Source of the DNA: Podarcis liolepis
Taxonomy: Eukaryota
Assembly: GCA_965112155.1 (NCBI GenBank)
Contig: OZ218100.1
DNA: 64,000 nucleotides
Reading direction: 5' to 3' (one strand)
The notes beneath the pieces were generated by a model, which was given only the letters and a program-made list of their open reading frames with translations, was not told the DNA's origin and did no database searches. The position numbers and the translations under genes are program-made. Shown here one piece after another: positions 5,199 to 37,213 of this stretch; the stretch's first letter is position 1, and each line of letters begins with the position of its first letter.

Positions 5199-5756
5199 CT
5201 CGGTGCCGGGCGGGGACAGAGGCGGGAACTCAGCAGATGCTGCCGCTACTCTCTGAAGAGAGGGGAGTTGGCAGCAGAAGCGGGAGGAGGCGGCAGGCAG
5301 CACGGAGCCCGCCAGGGGTAACTGGAGAAGCGGGAGAGGAGGGAGGGGAGAGGGCTGTTTCTTGGAAAGTAGCAGGAGGCAGCCCGGGAACGTGGATCCG
5401 GGAGCACATGCGATAGGGCTTCTGAGCACGTGCAGAGGGCCGGACCCCGTGCGTCTGAGATCATTAGGAGGAGAGAAAGAAAACAAGTTCCAGGTCAACA
5501 GAGAGGCTTGATAGCATGGTCACCAACGGGTGAACTTTGTAACGATAGCGTGGTCCCACTCAGAAGGCAGTTTTGAGTACAATAACACACTGGTTGTTGA
5601 GTTGAGCTAGTTCAACCACAATGGGTAAAAGGGAAGAAGTAATCTTTCTGGTTTGGTTAATACTGGACGAAACCCTATTGGAGATACTTTACACAGGGCA
5701 TGATAAGGCATGGAGGCTGCCAAGAAATGAAAAGAACGTAAGCACTTAAATACTTA

Positions 5757-29200: not shown

Positions 29201-29613
29201 CCACCATGACAACCATACAGCTGTCCTAAGATGCCATTGGCCTGATGTGTGATGTGGCACTCTGGTTTTCTTGACTAGGCAGGAATAAATGTGATCTGAA
29301 AGTGGAGGATATTAACATCAGTCCCTTGTCATGGTCAACTCACCTCCTGTTGAATTTTAGGCTTTCAGCAGTTTTCCCCCCTTTGCAGAAGCAGGGGACC
29401 TATTAAGGTGGTCCACTCTCAGAGGCTGATGGATTCAACTGGTTTCCAGATGGATAGATATTTCAGCTAATATGACTGGCACTTCTGTTGAAACTCTGGC
29501 CAATGTGTGGAATATACAGTCCAGGCTCCCTTGGATGAAACCAATTTTCTAGATCCATTTCAACTGGGGTTCTGAGAATGTAGAATACATTGCTGCAAAT
29601 ATATATATATATT

Positions 29614-30405
29614 TGTCAGAGCTGCTTGAAGATCCTAGCTCACAGAGGATCACGCTAGCCAGCGGTCATTAAGTAAAAGTCTTTATTGAATTACAGTTTC
29701 CATTCTCACGCTGCTGCGCGCAACTCTACGCCTAGTAGCTAGGTCGGCGAAGCTCCGTCTGAGTCTCCGCCCTGTGTGCACCAACTTAATATCCTAGCCT
29801 TGCTCCACCTTTTCCTCCTGACTGTCCTCCTCTGGGTCCCTCTACCCCCCGGGGCTTCTTCCTTCCGGGATTCTTCTGACGCTGACCCAGACCCTCCTGC
29901 CTCTTTGCGCCGGGCTTTAGGACCTGGCTCTCTTTCGGGGCTGCTTACTGCGCCGCCTTCCTCTGCATTTGAACTTGGCGCGCGCGCCCAACCTTCCACT
30001 TTCCTCTCAACCGTTTCTTCGCTCCCCGATGGAGGTGTGGCCATCCCCGACTCATGTCCTCCCTCCTGTGGAGGTGTGGCCACTCCTGACTCATGTCCTC
30101 CCTCCTGTGGTGAGCTGCCAGCGCTTCCCCCCTGGCTCCCTTCCTCTTCCCTGCTTCCTGGCGGTGACGCTGGTCCCGATTTCCAGCTGCTCCCCCCTGA
30201 GTCCTCTCTGGCTCTGTCTTCCTGGGGTGCCCCCCTAGACTCCCCCCTTGCCCTCGCCACTGGTGCTCCTTTCTGTGAATCCTCTGATTCACTGGAAAGA
30301 CTAGGAGATCTCGGGTCGTCGTCGTCACTCATCTTTTCTTCTGCCTCCTCCCCTTCGCTCTCTGTTTCCTCCCTTGCCCGTGCTTCTGCTCCTAAACCCC
30401 TGACA
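29614..30405 (-). repeat. 3' LTR (792 bp)
   Basis: Identical by eye to 35444-36235 (offset 5830); AATAAA on the minus strand at 29682-29687. Confidence 0.97.
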
Positions 30406-33400
30406 TCCATCCCCCCCTCGAAGCCCCCCATTCCCCCCTCCCCTCCTTCCGGTGCTGGAGCTGGGGGCTGCTGTTGCAAAGGGACGAACGTCGGGTATCG
30501 GTCGCTTCCCGTGGCAGGCCTCCATCTGAAGTCTCCCGGGTCTTCCTCCCCGCTCTCGTCGACGACAGTCACCTCCGCTTCCATCTCTGTGCCGCCGTGC
30601 TCGAAACCAGGGTCGTCCCCGAAAACGTCCATGTCCGTCTCTCCCTCACTTCCTCCTGTCGGTGTTGCTCGTCCTGGGCCTTCCAGCCACCGTCTGCGCC
30701 ACTGCTCCTCTGGCCTATCGTCCCACCAATACGAGGGTTCTGATGCAGATCCCGAGGGTGACCCCTCCGGGGAACGGACGTCTTGTGTCGGGTCCTCGTC
30801 CGAGTCGAACCCCCGGAAAGTGCTGGCCGAAAGTGTGGGCGTGAAAAGCCAGTCGTCAAAATATTCTGCTGGCATAGGTCTATGGGGAAAGAGGGCATGA
30901 AACTCGTCTTTGAGGAGAGGTTCGTCCAAGGCGTAGCCCGGCACCCAGCTGTTCGCACTGGCCGGGGTGCCCTCCTTGGCGAGAAAGTATTCTACCCCCT
31001 CTTCCCCCCATCTGGAGTCCAAAATCTCAGTGACTTCGTTGATGCGCTCCTTCTGTGCCACTTCCGCGTGCCCTGTTCTGTCTCTGACCGGACTCGGCGC
31101 TGTTCCGGGTTCCTGGAACCTGTGCGGTGCCTTGTAGGGAGTGAGCACCGATCTGTGGAATACCGGATGCATTCTGGAACCCTCCGGAAGTGCCAGTCTG
31201 AAAGCTACCGGGTTGACCTGCTCTTCGACTTGGTAGGGCCCCAGTTGTTTATGCCCTAGTTTCTTCTTGGCCAACGACCTGGCCGGCACTGCGTGGGCTG
31301 CTAACCAAACCCAGTCTCCCACGTGGAGCTCTTCTCCAACCCTTCTGTGCTTGTCTGCTTGTACCTTGTATGCGTGCTTGGCCAGCTCCAGGTGGCGCCT
31401 CAGCTGATCGTGGACCTCCTGCAGCTCCGACGCGAACGCATCTGCTGTCTGCGGCTCCCCCTCCCCCATTCTTTCCAGTCCCGGGAAGGTTCTGGGGTGC
31501 CTCCCGTTGTTGGCGAAGAACGGCGTGACCCCCGTGGACACGTGCTTCGTGTTGTTGTAGGCGAACTCGGCAAGCGGTAGGTAATCCACCCACGTCGCAG
31601 GCTGTTGATTTGCATAACATCTCAGGTACTGCTGCATGATGGCATTGACCCGCTCCGCTTGCCCGTTGGTCTGCGGGTGTCTCGCCGACGCCAGGTTGAT
31701 CTTGACGTTCAGGAAGCCCATCAGCTTCTGCCAGAAATTCGAGATGAACTGCCGCCCCCGGTCGGACAGAATAGACCGTGGCAGACCATGAACCTTGAAC
31801 ACGTGGTCTATGAACAGTTTGGCGGTTTGCTCCGCCGTGGCCACCTTCGCACACGGAATGAAATGCGCCATCTTGGAAAACAGGTCCACCACCACCAGCA
31901 CTGCCGTCTTGCCCCTTGAGCTGGGCAGATCCGTGACAAAGTCCAGAGCCACCCTTTCCCAAGGTTCGACCGGAGTTTGCAGCGGTTCCAACAGTCCGGC
32001 CGGCGGTTTGTGCACTGGTTTGGCCCTCTGGCAGGTGTCGCACCTCGCCACGTAGTCTGCGACCTCCCCTCTCATTCCAGGCCACCAGAAATCCCTGGCT
32101 ACTAATTCCACCGTCTTCTCCTTGCCAAAGTGCCCGGCCGTGGGCGCGTCGTGCAGCTGCTGCAGCACCTTGGCTCGAAGTTCGTCTCCCGGCACGTAGA
32201 TGGCCCCTTTTCGGATGAGCAATCCATCTCGTAGCCGGAAACCGTCGGCCGCTGCCTTGCCCCTTTGCACCTCTGCCATCTTTGCTTGTGCGAAGGAGTC
32301 CTCCTGCAACGCACGTCGCACCGCCTCTAGGTCCACGGTCGCCGCGGCGCACGCCCACACTGCTGGTGCGAAGATGTGCATGGCGGCCGCTGGCGTTGCG
32401 TCCTCCAGATACTGTGGCTTACGGGAGAGAGCGTCTGCCATGATGTTGGTGTCCCCCGGGACATACTCTATTCGGAAGTCGAAGTTTGCAAAGAACTCAG
32501 CCCAACGTATCTGCCTCTGGTTCAGGAACTGTGCCGTGCGCCAGTGCTCTAGATTCTTGTGGTCCGTGCAAACCTGCACCGTGTGCTTGGCGCCGATCAG
32601 AAAGTGCCTCCACGCCTTGAACGCTGCGTGAATGGCCAGCAACTCCCTGTCCCAGATGGTGTAGTTCTGTTCGGACTTGCTGAGCTTCCTGGAGTAAAAC
32701 GCTCCCGGTCGCCACACCCCCTGTGGGTCTTTCTGCAACAGGACCGCCCCCACGGCTCTGTCCGAGGCGTCTGTCTCCACCCTCATCGGCTTGCTGGGGT
32801 TGACATGAAGCAGCTGCTCTTCCGACGCGAAGAGACGCTTGAGTGCCTGAAAGGACTGCTCCGCCTGCGCTGTCCAAACGAACTTCTTCTTCTTGGAGCT
32901 AAGCGTGTCAGTGATGGCCGCTGTCTGCATCGCGAAGCCCTTGATAAACTTGCGATAGAAGTTCGCAAAGCCGACAAACCGTTGGACCTCCTTCCGGTTG
33001 CGCGGACTCTTCCAATCCAACACCGCTCGAACCTTGGCGCTGTCCATGGCGAGCCCCTTGTCAGACAGCTTGTAGCCCAGAAAATCCACCTCCGGCACGT
33101 CAAATTGGCACTTCTCCAGCTTGGCGTAGAGCCTATGTTGCTTTAGCCTGCTCAGCACTTCTTTGACGTGTCCGTCATGCTCCTGCTGCGACTCCGAAAA
33201 GATCAGGATGTCATCTAAGAAACAGACGCACGTCTTGTAGAGAAGTCCCGCCAATACGTGATGCATAAACGCTTGAAAAACGTGGGAGCCATTTTGCAAT
33301 CCAAAAGGCATAACTCTATATTCGTAGGTCCCCAGTGGCGTGAACATGGCTGTCTTCCACTCATCTCCTTCCCGCATGCGAATGAGGTTGTACGCCCCCC

Positions 33401-34340
33401 GCAGGTCCAACTTGGTGAACACTCTGCCCTTCCGTACCTTTGCGAGGAGGTCGTCAATACGGGGCATGGGGAAGTCCGATGGCCTAGTCAGACTGTTCAA
33501 AATCCTGTAATCCACTACCAGTCTTTTCTGGGGCGTGTCCCGCTTCTTAACAAAGAATACGGGACTGCCCCCCACTGCCCTGGACTCCCGGATGAAGCCG
33601 CGTTGCAAATTATGGTCAATGAACTCTTTGAGTTCCTGCAGTTCGTCCTCTGACATGGAATACAGTTTCCCTTTAGGCAGCGCCGCCCCCGGCAGCAGGT
33701 CAATTTTGCAGTCATATGGTCTGTGAGGGGGTAGCCTGTCTGCCTCCTTCTCGCAGAAAACTTCCAAAAATTCAGCGTACTTGTGTGGAATCGCTTGCAG
33801 CGTGCCTAGCAGCAGCTGTGACTCCTCTTCCTCTCCTTCCTGCCTGGGCACGATGCAGTGTTCAGCACAAAAGGAAGAGCCGAAGGTCAGCTGCCTCTGG
33901 TACCAAGCCATCGCTGGGCTGTGCTTGTCCAGCCAACTCATGCCCAATACAATGGGCGTGTCAGATAGTCGAGTGACGTTGAAGCTGATGATTTCTCTGT
34001 GATTCCCAAGTCGCATCACCATTGGTGGCGTCTGCTTCACCACTTGCCCCCCGAGCAGCTCCCTGCCATCCACCGTGACAACCTGCAGGGGCAGTGTGGC
34101 CGGCAGCAACTGCACAGCGTGCCTGTCGACAAAGTCCTGCCCTATAAAGTCCGCATTGCTGCCTGAGTCAATGGTGATTGGCACGTCCATGGTGATTCCA
34201 TTGGGCAGTTGGAGAGACGCTGTGAGCCTCACTACTGGTTTGGGCGGGAGGGGGTTCACGGGCTGTAAAACCGCTGGGGACTGCGTCACTAACACGTCTG
34301 GCTGGGCCCCAGTGCCTCTTCCTCCAGCCAGACAGCCTCG
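29739..34340 (-). CDS. pol: Pol (protease, RT, RNase H, integrase, GPY/F, chromodomain, long acidic tail), expressed as Gag-Pol by -1 frameshift, about 1871 aa in total
   Basis: Motifs IDSGS (PR); LDLRGAYN, MPFGL, FLDDILI (RT); ETDASD (RH); H..H..CDTC, LDFVTD, SDRG, GQAERVN (IN); GPYQ..HPVFH; EILDSRW..EYF..NSW (chromodomain). The ORF-track start at 34424 is not an ATG. Confidence 0.95.
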   Translation of the reverse strand, partial: RGCLAGGRGTGAQPDVLVTQSPAVLQPVNPLPPKPVVRLTASLQLPNGITMDVPITIDSGSNADFIGQDFVDRHAVQLLPATLPLQVVTVDGRELLGGQVVKQTPPMVMRLGNHREIISFNVTRLSDTPIVLGMSWLDKHSPAMAWYQRQLTFGSSFCAEHCIVPRQEGEEEESQLLLGTLQAIPHKYAEFLEVFCEKEADRLPPHRPYDCKIDLLPGAALPKGKLYSMSEDELQELKEFIDHNLQRGFIRESRAVGGSPVFFVKKRDTPQKRLVVDYRILNSLTRPSDFPMPRIDDLLAKVRKGRVFTKLDLRGAYNLIRMREGDEWKTAMFTPLGTYEYRVMPFGLQNGSHVFQAFMHHVLAGLLYKTCVCFLDDILIFSESQQEHDGHVKEVLSRLKQHRLYAKLEKCQFDVPEVDFLGYKLSDKGLAMDSAKVRAVLDWKSPRNRKEVQRFVGFANFYRKFIKGFAMQTAAITDTLSSKKKKFVWTAQAEQSFQALKRLFASEEQLLHVNPSKPMRVETDASDRAVGAVLLQKDPQGVWRPGAFYSRKLSKSEQNYTIWDRELLAIHAAFKAWRHFLIGAKHTVQVCTDHKNLEHWRTAQFLNQRQIRWAEFFANFDFRIEYVPGDTNIMADALSRKPQYLEDATPAAAMHIFAPAVWACAAATVDLEAVRRALQEDSFAQAKMAEVQRGKAAADGFRLRDGLLIRKGAIYVPGDELRAKVLQQLHDAPTAGHFGKEKTVELVARDFWWPGMRGEVADYVARCDTCQRAKPVHKPPAGLLEPLQTPVEPWERVALDFVTDLPSSRGKTAVLVVVDLFSKMAHFIPCAKVATAEQTAKLFIDHVFKVHGLPRSILSDRGRQFISNFWQKLMGFLNVKINLASARHPQTNGQAERVNAIMQQYLRCYANQQPATWVDYLPLAEFAYNNTKHVSTGVTPFFANNGRHPRTFPGLERMGEGEPQTADAFASELQEVHDQLRRHLELAKHAYKVQADKHRRVGEELHVGDWVWLAAHAVPARSLAKKKLGHKQLGPYQVEEQVNPVAFRLALPEGSRMHPVFHRSVLTPYKAPHRFQEPGTAPSPVRDRTGHAEVAQKERINEVTEILDSRWGEEGVEYFLAKEGTPASANSWVPGYALDEPLLKDEFHALFPHRPMPAEYFDDWLFTPTLSASTFRGFDSDEDPTQDVRSPEGSPSGSASEPSYWWDDRPEEQWRRRWLEGPGRATPTGGSEGETDMDVFGDDPGFEHGGTEMEAEVTVVDESGEEDPGDFRWRPATGSDRYPTFVPLQQQPPAPAPEGGEGGMGGFEGGMDVRGLGAEARAREETESEGEEAEEKMSDDDDPRSPSLSSESEDSQKGAPVARARGESRGAPQEDRAREDSGGSSWKSGPASPPGSREEEGSQGGSAGSSPQEGGHESGVATPPQEGGHESGMATPPSGSEETVERKVEGWARAPSSNAEEGGAVSSPEREPGPKARRKEAGGSGSASEESRKEEAPGGRGTQRRTVRRKRWSKARILSWCTQGGDSDGASPT
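30406..30420 (-). other. Polypurine tract (PPT)
   Basis: Minus strand cgagggggggatgga directly precedes the TGTCA start of the 3' LTR. Confidence 0.9.
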
Positions 34341-34346
34341 TTTCCC
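34274..34346 (-). promoter_or_regulatory. -1 ribosomal frameshift signal (G GGA AAC plus H-type pseudoknot)
   Basis: Heptamer at 34346-34340 in the gag frame, 6-nt spacer, 10-bp stem 1 GUCUGGCUGG/CCAGCCAGAC, stem 2 CUGGGG/CCCCAG; pol is in the -1 frame. Confidence 0.88.
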
Positions 34347-35353
34347 TGCTGTGGTCCCCCTTGCTGTGTTGCAGCAGTCACCATTGCTGAGGCTGCAGTG
34401 AGCTTGTGGGGCCTCTGGGGACACTCTTTCGCCATATGCCCTGGCTCCTCACAGACGTAACACTTCCTGTTTCCTCTAGGAGGCTTCGCTTTCACTGCTG
34501 CTGGTGCTAGGGCTCTGGTTGCTGACTGAGCCCTTGCACCTCCCACCTCCATAGGTTCGGCTCCTCCTCCTGGCGGAGGCGTGGATTGCGCCCGCGCTGC
34601 TTCCCTGGGAAAGAAGGAGGGGCCCCCGGCTGGTTCGCGCCCTCCACGCCCTTCGTCCCTGTTCCACGGACGTCCTTCCAGCCTCACCCCCACTGCCAGT
34701 GCCCTCTGAACGACCTCCTGGGTGGTTCGGGGTCTCTCCCCCCTGGCGATCTCATCTTTAATCGAGTTATGCAGCCCCTCCCAAAAGAGGTCTCTTACAG
34801 GAGCCGAATCTCTGTCCCATTCCAGGGCACTGACCAAGGCGAAAAAGCGGGCATGGTACTGCCTGACGCTGGCCCTCCCTTGTCTCAGCCCATGCACCTC
34901 CTTCCGTGCAAGATCCACGTCAATACTTGATAAAAAACACCCATCCATTGCTTTAATAAAGGCATCTGCATTCTGTAGCGCCGGATCCTTATCTCTCCAT
35001 AAATTGCGTAGCCATGCTCTCGCATCCCCATGCAGATGGGACATGATGAACCCCACTCTCTCTTGTTCATCTCTAAAGTCTTTATGCAGCAGTTGCAGTG
35101 CGCACAGTACGTCGGCTCTAAAGTTGGGATACTGTTGCAGGTTCCCATCGAAGTGAGAGACCAGCCCGCCTGTCCGTCTCGCCAACCCAATGCCCTCCTG
35201 CCGGGGTGTCTGCTTTGTCAGCACGTCTAACCTGACCTGGAGATCCCTGCAGGCTGCGGCTGCTTCCTCCTCCCTCTTCCTGGATGCTAGAGCCTCGGCG
35301 TTCAGTTGTGCCACCGCGTTTCTGAGTTCCTCTATCTGCTGCTCAGCCGTCAT
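34289..35353 (-). CDS. gag: Gag (354 aa): coiled coil, capsid-like domain, CCHC zinc knuckle
   Basis: ATG 90 nt downstream of the 5' LTR; LHGDARAW and LRQG..SV..Y capsid motifs; CYVCEEPGHMAKEC knuckle. Confidence 0.95.
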   Translation of the reverse strand: MTAEQQIEELRNAVAQLNAEALASRKREEEAAAACRDLQVRLDVLTKQTPRQEGIGLARRTGGLVSHFDGNLQQYPNFRADVLCALQLLHKDFRDEQERVGFIMSHLHGDARAWLRNLWRDKDPALQNADAFIKAMDGCFLSSIDVDLARKEVHGLRQGRASVRQYHARFFALVSALEWDRDSAPVRDLFWEGLHNSIKDEIARGERPRTTQEVVQRALAVGVRLEGRPWNRDEGRGGREPAGGPSFFPREAARAQSTPPPGGGAEPMEVGGARAQSATRALAPAAVKAKPPRGNRKCYVCEEPGHMAKECPQRPHKLTAASAMVTAATQQGGPQQGNEAVWLEEEALGPSQTC

Positions 35354-35430
35354 GTCGTCTGCCGTTCGTGAGCTTGCTAGTAGGCACCTGTGTCTCTCCC
35401 CTCCTCGAGGCTGTAGATGCCCACAAGTGG

Positions 35431-35441
35431 AGACGGAGCTT
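35431..35441 (-). other. Primer-binding site, self-priming type
   Basis: AAGCTCCGTCT lies 2 nt after the 5' LTR, has no TGG start, and is exactly complementary to AGACGGAGCTT at 35590-35580 in the LTR. Confidence 0.88.
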
Positions 35442-35443
35442 AC

Positions 35444-36235
35444 TGTCAGAGCTGCTTGAAGATCCTAGCTCACAGAGGATCACGCTAGCCAGCGGTCATT
35501 AAGTAAAAGTCTTTATTGAATTACAGTTTCCATTCTCACGCTGCTGCGCGCAACTCTACGCCTAGTAGCTAGGTCGGCGAAGCTCCGTCTGAGTCTCCGC
35601 CCTGTGTGCACCAACTTAATATCCTAGCCTTGCTCCACCTTTTCCTCCTGACTGTCCTCCTCTGGGTCCCTCTACCCCCCGGGGCTTCTTCCTTCCGGGA
35701 TTCTTCTGACGCTGACCCAGACCCTCCTGCCTCTTTGCGCCGGGCTTTAGGACCTGGCTCTCTTTCGGGGCTGCTTACTGCGCCGCCTTCCTCTGCATTT
35801 GAACTTGGCGCGCGCGCCCAACCTTCCACTTTCCTCTCAACCGTTTCTTCGCTCCCCGATGGAGGTGTGGCCATCCCCGACTCATGTCCTCCCTCCTGTG
35901 GAGGTGTGGCCACTCCTGACTCATGTCCTCCCTCCTGTGGTGAGCTGCCAGCGCTTCCCCCCTGGCTCCCTTCCTCTTCCCTGCTTCCTGGCGGTGACGC
36001 TGGTCCCGATTTCCAGCTGCTCCCCCCTGAGTCCTCTCTGGCTCTGTCTTCCTGGGGTGCCCCCCTAGACTCCCCCCTTGCCCTCGCCACTGGTGCTCCT
36101 TTCTGTGAATCCTCTGATTCACTGGAAAGACTAGGAGATCTCGGGTCGTCGTCGTCACTCATCTTTTCTTCTGCCTCCTCCCCTTCGCTCTCTGTTTCCT
36201 CCCTTGCCCGTGCTTCTGCTCCTAAACCCCTGACA
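35444..36235 (-). repeat. 5' LTR (792 bp): U3 about 36235-35591, R from about 35590, then U5
   Basis: TATTAA at 35621-35616 (about -31 from the predicted start), AATAAA at 35517-35512, TG...CA ends. Confidence 0.97.
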
Positions 36236-37213
36236 ATATTAAAAATTCAGAAATATAGGAAAATAAATAGGAACCATCCTAGGAACCAGTAACACATCAT
36301 AAGTTACAGCACAAAGGGAACTTCATAAGCAACTTAGTAGTTTCCACTATCTAGGAACATATGATGTTCAGACTATTCAACACTATTTTCATCACTCTCT
36401 GAAAAGCACCAACATTCTTGTCATCAGTGATGGGATTTTCTATTCAACCACACCTATTTATTATCTGTATAGCAACTAATGCAAATGTGGCAAGAAGAGA
36501 AAGGAATTGGGCATTAACTTCTCTGCCAATTATATTTCGTGCTGCCTTATTTTGTTCCAGTTGCATCTTATTGAACAAAAAGGAAGGAATGCCAATACAC
36601 TGTTGATAACCAATTGTTTAAAGTGCTATGCCCAGTTTTTATGGTGAGTATTTAAGTTGCGTATGGGAAATGAAAATCAATAGCTGAGCAATGAGGCATG
36701 CAGGTTGGAGAGATGTGAGTGGAAATGGAGTATTGGTGTTAAGCAGTACTAACAGGGCTTATAATTTACGGTTGAATTTGGTTTTCTTTCTTTTGGAATC
36801 AGAAGAATAAGTTGGCACATTTTCAGCCCCTTTATTTATCATTTGGTATTTAAGACAAATATATAGGGACTGCATAAACAACCCCAGCTTTTTATTAAAA
36901 ACGCCACAATTTGTTTTTCCATTCTTGAACCTGGGAACTTCTGCACGTAAAGCAGGTGCTCTGCTACTGAGCAATGGTCCCAACCTCTACGTCCAGTGGG
37001 GCTTACTCCTTGTAGGATTCAGTATTCAAATATGCTTACATTGGCCAATGCATCTGACCGCCTTTACAGGGCTGCTTGAGTAGAAACCATCTGCTGTGGA
37101 GATTGTGGAAACTATTCCATTTCCCCTAGAGAAACAGTTGTGGAGGCTGGGCAGTAGGATCAATGGGTTTATAGGCTAATCCAGTTTAGCAAATCCTGTG
37201 AAATGCTACATTC

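Follow-up and report, generated by a model that had tools for sequence, protein, structure and literature searches.

A lizard Ty3/gypsy retrotransposon with the sequence design of Tf1-type self-priming

Main finding

The window analyzed here, by which we mean the whole 64-kb stretch of DNA, contains on its minus strand a Ty3/gypsy retrotransposon that inserted recently, appears to be intact and most likely belongs among the vertebrate chromoviruses. This element very probably begins reverse transcription by self-priming in the manner of Tf1 and not with a tRNA, through a start site, a cleavage and a priming step that we infer. Support for self-priming comes from an 11/11 complement that pairs the primer-binding site (PBS) with a segment of the element's own LTR, from the position and the rarity of this pair, and from the shared architecture and covariation of the equivalent pairs in related elements. 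The earlier note on this DNA had interpreted the locus as an intact amniote element using the Tf1-type mechanism, and this interpretation is supported by the complete pairing, the intact and young state of the element and the covariation in its relatives.

Architecture of the element and its copies

Direct-repeat searches and alignments delimited the element and its parts (Table 1). The LTR pair consists of 792-bp direct repeats with 100% identity and TG..CA termini, and a 5-bp target duplication (ATATT) abuts both LTR outer ends. The LTRs are identical, both the gag and the pol frames are open, and the element is very young. We found no second copy or fragment of it within the 64-kb window. 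The inner end of the 3' LTR is preceded by a polypurine tract, and junctions of the form GGGGAT(G)A/TGTCA, which are similar to this tract/LTR junction, occur in three related metagenome loci (L004, L005 and L053; see below). Based on the position of the polyadenylation signal, R is predicted to end approximately 10-30 nt past AATAAA, which would put the R/U5 border at approximately 35502-35482 and give an R of approximately 90-100 nt and a U5 of approximately 50 nt.

Table 1. Features of the lizard element and their positions in the window
Feature	Position	Strand	Basis or remark
Complete LTR retrotransposon, 6622 bp, LTR-PBS-gag-pol-PPT-LTR	29614..36235	minus	Direct-repeat search and alignment
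5' LTR, 792 bp	35444..36235	minus	LTR alignment; 35444 and 36235 are the exact points at which contigs from other copies diverge
3' LTR, 792 bp	29614..30405	minus	LTR alignment; same sequence as 5' LTR
Target-site duplication ATATT, one side	29609..29613		Adjoins LTR outer end
Target-site duplication ATATT, other side	36236..36240		Adjoins LTR outer end
TATA-like box TATTAA	35616..35621	minus	First T lies 31 nt before predicted start 35590
Predicted self-primer AGACGGAGCTT, taken as RNA nt 1-11 and start of R	35580..35590	minus	Predicted start
Polyadenylation signal AATAAA	35512..35517	minus	Sequence
GT dinucleotide between LTR end and PBS	35442..35443	minus	The CA-GT-PBS junction also occurs in most signature-bearing relatives
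Primer-binding site AAGCTCCGTCT	35431..35441	minus	Exact complement of 35590-35580
11-mer copy in 3' LTR, SDGAS in pol frame	29750..29760	minus	Twin of 35590-35580
Polypurine tract GAGGGGGGGATGGA	30406..30419	minus	Sequence; abuts 3' LTR
gag, 354 aa: Retrotrans_gag / Ty3 capsid and CCHC zinc knuckle	34289..35353	minus	Domain matches
pol frame, 1561 codons: PR-RT-RNase H-IN-SH3_Tf2-1, degenerate chromodomain and long tail	29739..34424	minus	-1 relative to gag

Four sequencing runs from four organisms contain many copies of the element, which at the level of contigs are up to more than 10% diverged. At precisely 35444 and 36235 these contigs either break off or pass into a different context, thereby confirming the LTR borders. 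The U3 region displays a tandem duplication with a unit of approximately 39 nt (window 35862-35939, minus strand). In two runs of other organisms the contigs skip 52 nt here (joint 35859 to 35912) and carry 13 other letters instead, which makes them 39 nt shorter; one possible reading is that these are single-unit copies. One run (X12) has a summed depth of contigs across the LTR (35444-36235) that exceeds that of the flank by four to five orders of magnitude, and the LTR family is very abundant in the organism concerned. Several runs also show a higher depth over the LTR than over the internal region, consistent with the presence of many solo LTRs.

The primer-binding site and its complement in the LTR

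The 5' LTR terminates in ...CTGACA at 35444 and is followed by GT at 35443-35442 and then by AAGCTCCGTCT at 35441-35431. The earlier statement that a PBS lies 2 nt after U5 and lacks a TGG proved exact to the base on the minus strand: the first TGG occurs approximately 22 nt past the 5' LTR, with none nearer the LTR end. Comparison of AAGCTCCGTCT with AGACGGAGCTT (35590-35580) showed an exact 11/11 reverse complement. The duplex formed by PBS and LTR is exactly 11 bp long, with a mismatch at both flanking positions, and its first paired base, 35590, is the A of an initiator-like CTCAGA. The location claimed for this complement, 31 nt after the start of TATTAA, is correct in every coordinate. 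The TATTAA element is not a canonical TATA box, and a transcription start at 35590 is a prediction from the TATA/initiator geometry together with the same geometry in relatives.

We then considered how often such a match would arise by chance. In the window there are three occurrences of the 11-mer, one being the PBS and the other two lying in the LTRs, whereas 100 shuffles gave an expectation of 0. A complement of at least 11 nt to the 16 nt that follow the LTR was present in 17 of 3000 shuffled LTRs (0.6%). When 1664 internal 16-nt windows were compared with the real LTR, no match as long as 11 nt arose, the maximum of 10 being seen twice. Both the shuffle and the internal-window figures were computed prior to any requirement on position; the need for one arm to lie at +2 after the LTR and the other 31 nt past a TATA-like box cuts the chance much further. 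An Rfam search of positions 35300-36300 returned no match, and a search for tRNA genes recovered none within the 64-kb window.

In the predicted fold of the leader RNA (35590..35415), nucleotides 1-11 pair 11/11 with the PBS in both the minimum free energy (MFE) and the centroid structures, across a primer-to-PBS distance of 149 nt. The fold energy of this whole leader is no more stable than that of shuffled sequences (z = -0.70). With regard to variation between copies, the best 40 of 156 differences in the sequencing runs include 0 inside either 11-mer, the nearest flankers being 35429, 35573, 35603 and 35608; as only about 0.9 of these 40 would be expected inside the 11-mers by chance, this says little about their conservation.

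The copy of the 11-mer in the 3' LTR had also been claimed to encode part of the Pol tail. In the pol frame it does read S-D-G-A-S, six codons before the stop. The frame enters the 3' LTR for 667 nt (29739-30405), where it crosses U3, passes the TATA-like box as well as the predicted start, and ends six codons past the 11-mer. The LTR is purine-rich on the minus strand, other frames on both strands are open for 127-228 codons, and the LTRs of diverged copies contain small indels. It is therefore doubtful that the pol tail in the LTR represents real coding. A Pol protein of Podarcis muralis with 94% identity over the core terminates in ...GGDSDGASPV, such that the region of the 11-mer is kept and the neighbouring residues differ. 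We consider it fairly unlikely that the family is mobile now in lacertids and that the pol tail is truly translated, in which case the same 11 nt would act at once as transcription start, reverse transcription primer, partner of the PBS and coding sequence (SDGAS). If both were true, this would be the first amniote system for studying Tf1-type self-priming.

Covariation of primer and binding site in related elements

An alignment of the Pol core yielded 80 metagenome loci with 36-47% Pol identity. Among those that possess an inter-element region, L004, L005 and L053 are the three closest. All three show an LTR end of the form ...ACA followed by GT and then by a site of 11-12 nt, namely TTGATTCGAATT, TTGAACCGGAAT and TTGTTCACCTT respectively, and the exact complement of each site is located in the same LTR, where a TATAAATA or TATATAAG box precedes it by 31-33 nt. 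These loci (L004 4450-4510, L005 4270-4325, L053 1950-2005) additionally share a conserved CACCAGT directly after the primer. The nucleotides immediately preceding the predicted start in L005 and L053 duplicate a portion of the PBS sequence and are able to fold into a hairpin together with the primer region.

All 80 loci were scanned blindly, in both orientations, for the full signature, defined as: 1) an inverted pair of at least 10 nt; 2) a downstream arm 0-3 nt after CA; and 3) an upstream arm preceded, at 24-36 nt, by a TATA-like box. The scan recovered 10 sense matches versus 1 match in the antisense control, which is AT-rich. Three further loci contain the inverted pair in the sense orientation, with the TATA box unflagged. 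The layout in these 13 relatives is a primer of 10-13 nt, an LTR end in ...CA, 0-2 nt, and then the exact complement of the primer; a TATA-like box precedes the primer by 31-35 nt in 10 of the 13, and nine have the same CA-GT-PBS junction as the lizard element. Their primer/PBS pairs comprise 11 different sequences, none resembling that of the lizard, and most of the primers begin with A. The distance between primer and PBS ranges from 104 to 384 nt. In the MFE folds, 11 of the 13 relatives form every pair of the primer-PBS duplex, and L015 and L078 are one pair short.

Within the vertebrate clade, comparable matches were seen in two loci: in L036 the bases just past the LTR pair with the LTR (ATAATCCAGC with GCTGGATTAT), and in L014 the PBS pairs over 10-11 nt with its own 3' LTR. 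The LTRs of L014 (877-1262 and 5597-6058) are alike only in their last approximately 115 nt, and the 5' LTR carries a variant of the PBS match with two mismatches; the contig is a chimeric assembly, or else the element is a recombinant. Covariation of the PBS with the 5' end of R, which had been set as a check on the self-priming idea, is thus seen in the 13 metagenome relatives together with L014 and L036, each with a self-matching pair of its own. Priming by a tRNA predicts conserved sites, and hence sites that differ from element to element, each matched by its own LTR, speak against a tRNA primer. The signature also discriminates between lineages, as the other clades lack it and one locus, L069, has a TGG-type site instead. 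In this more distant relative (5596-5620) the sequence TGGTTGCGTCACC occurs two bases past the LTR, with no primer-type complement near a TATA box, so that this broad set of elements possibly includes a PBS of the tRNA type as well.

Affinities of the element

The closest protein matches of the element are entries from Podarcis muralis (84-94% identity), followed by a Podarcis family at 61%, families in Podarcis, Anolis and Gekko at about 50%, and amphibian, fish, fungal and metagenome elements at 36-47%. These matches identify the host as a lacertid lizard. In a Pol tree (FastTree, midpoint root), computed without named Tf1, sushi or Amn reference sequences, the lizard element falls in a squamate clade, the sister group of which consists of elements of Xenopus, Ascaphus and fishes. 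The next clades out comprise Batrachochytrium, the loci L007 and L010, and a clade with the signature-carriers L004, L005, L019 and L053. The best relative with a solved structure is Ty3 Gag-Pol, and the pol frame contains an RNase H domain and a match to Pfam SH3_Tf2-1. At the integrase's C-terminus (30645-31124, minus strand) the Pfam Chromo profile matches with E = 0.0064 and 16.8 bits, under the cut-off of 25.1; PF00385 scores in relatives at 50-62% identity, and the lizard chromodomain looks like a decayed version of this domain. Allowing for a tree without named references and a sub-threshold chromodomain, the vertebrate Tf1/sushi lineage is the most likely home of the element.

The proposed priming mechanism and its alternatives

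We propose that reverse transcription of the element would proceed as follows: 1) The RNA is predicted to begin with the A at 35590, which lies 31 nt from the first T of TATTAA. 2) Nucleotides 1-11 of the RNA (AGACGGAGCUU) would loop back across R-U5, a distance of 147 nt up to the LTR end, to pair with the PBS (AAGCUCCGUCU) located 2 nt past the LTR. 3) If Tf1 is taken as the model, the RNase H of the element would cleave behind nucleotide 11 and free a 3'-OH. 4) The freed 11-mer would then prime minus-strand strong-stop DNA across U5 and R. 5) Upon transfer to the 3' R, the intact 11-mer at 29760-29750 would restore the primer sequence.

A variant of this scheme retains self-priming and places the start of the RNA upstream of 35590, so that the 11-mer would be internal, and an unpaired 5' overhang would remain once cleavage had set it free. 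A start at 35590 is after all predicted, TATTAA is a weak TATA box, and the proposal for Tj1 speaks only of a 'potential cleavage site' beside the upstream LTR complement (PMC4600332). Nevertheless, a spacing of 31-35 nt between TATA box and primer recurs in 10 relatives, and the first paired base in the lizard element coincides with the A of an initiator-like motif, which makes an upstream start unlikely. A more radical departure would be priming at the PBS by a piece of a host tRNA or by some other small RNA of the host, with the LTR complement being incidental. Such a route has a precedent in the half-tRNA primers known from some Ty1/copia lineages (PMC6317226). However, the PBS has no TGG to accommodate a CCA end, an 11-nt complement in the LTR is improbable by chance, and conserved host RNAs would predict conserved sites rather than the 11 different PBS sequences of the relatives, each with its own LTR match. 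On these sequence grounds we regard a host RNA primer as extremely unlikely.

It is also conceivable that the pairing is real and serves in circularization of the genome during packaging, in dimerization or in control of translation, with priming taking another route. In retroviruses, long-range pairings of the 5' leader serve circularization and packaging, dimerization and translation control, and in the lizard element it is the pairing that the sequence displays, priming being a prediction. Yet, the downstream arm lies exactly at the place required of a PBS, 2 nt after U5, no alternative PBS is present, and the design equals the one experimentally tested in Tf1 (PMC7175516). A role of the pairing apart from priming is accordingly very unlikely.

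Comparison with known self-priming systems

The lizard element is a good new example of the Tf1-type self-priming design, the mechanism of which is already known, and it leaves the knowledge of that mechanism unchanged. To our knowledge, self-priming has been demonstrated experimentally only in fission-yeast elements, the vertebrate case being deduced from sequences. A search limited to open papers recovered none linking self-priming to a lizard element. As an intact copy with identical LTRs and a clean 11/11 pair, the element provides a concrete amniote candidate with a testable prediction of the start at 35590. The relatives further suggest a rule for annotation: LTR finders that require a tRNA-type PBS would miss or mis-score elements with a layout consisting of a TATA box, approximately 31-35 nt, the primer and then ...CA-GT-PBS.

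In Tf1, an 11-nt duplex forms between the 5' end of the RNA and the PBS beside the 5' LTR independently of tRNA, and RNase H cuts between bases 11 and 12 (PMC7175516). Tf1 and Tf2 of Schizosaccharomyces pombe are the founding self-priming Ty3/gypsy elements, and the lizard element resembles them in the 11-nt duplex of RNA 5' end and PBS (predicted in the lizard), in its Ty3/gypsy affinity and in the Tf2-1-type SH3 domain of the integrase. It differs in residing in a lizard rather than a yeast, in the -1 frame change that separates gag and pol, in its larger LTR (792 bp) and in being known from sequence alone. The primer sequences are likewise unrelated, with the PBS of Tf1 starting with ATAAC (PMC11042837) and that of the lizard element with AAGCT. 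Self-priming has also been predicted for Tj1 of S. japonicus and for the Tcn1 clade of fungi and non-seed plants, on the basis of an LTR segment complementary to the PBS (PMC4600332, PMC6317226, PMC7175516). This is the same kind of evidence as is available for the lizard element, although those elements belong to other hosts and other Pol clades, and mobility has been demonstrated for Tj1 and not for the lizard element.

Another close system is that of the vertebrate Tf1/sushi elements, i.e. the V-clade chromoviruses such as sushi-ichi and Amn-ichi/ni/san, which have been reported from fish, amphibians and sauropsids (PMC2774666). As the earlier note stated, the same mechanism had been proposed for these elements; this proposal is indeed already published, in that two papers (PMC6317226 and PMC4600332, citing Butler 2001) describe self-priming in Tf1/sushi elements "from yeast and vertebrates". 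The lizard Pol groups with elements of Anolis, Gekko, Xenopus, Ascaphus and fishes, and the lizard element departs from the V-clade in its degenerate chromodomain and in a pol frame that continues deep into the 3' LTR.
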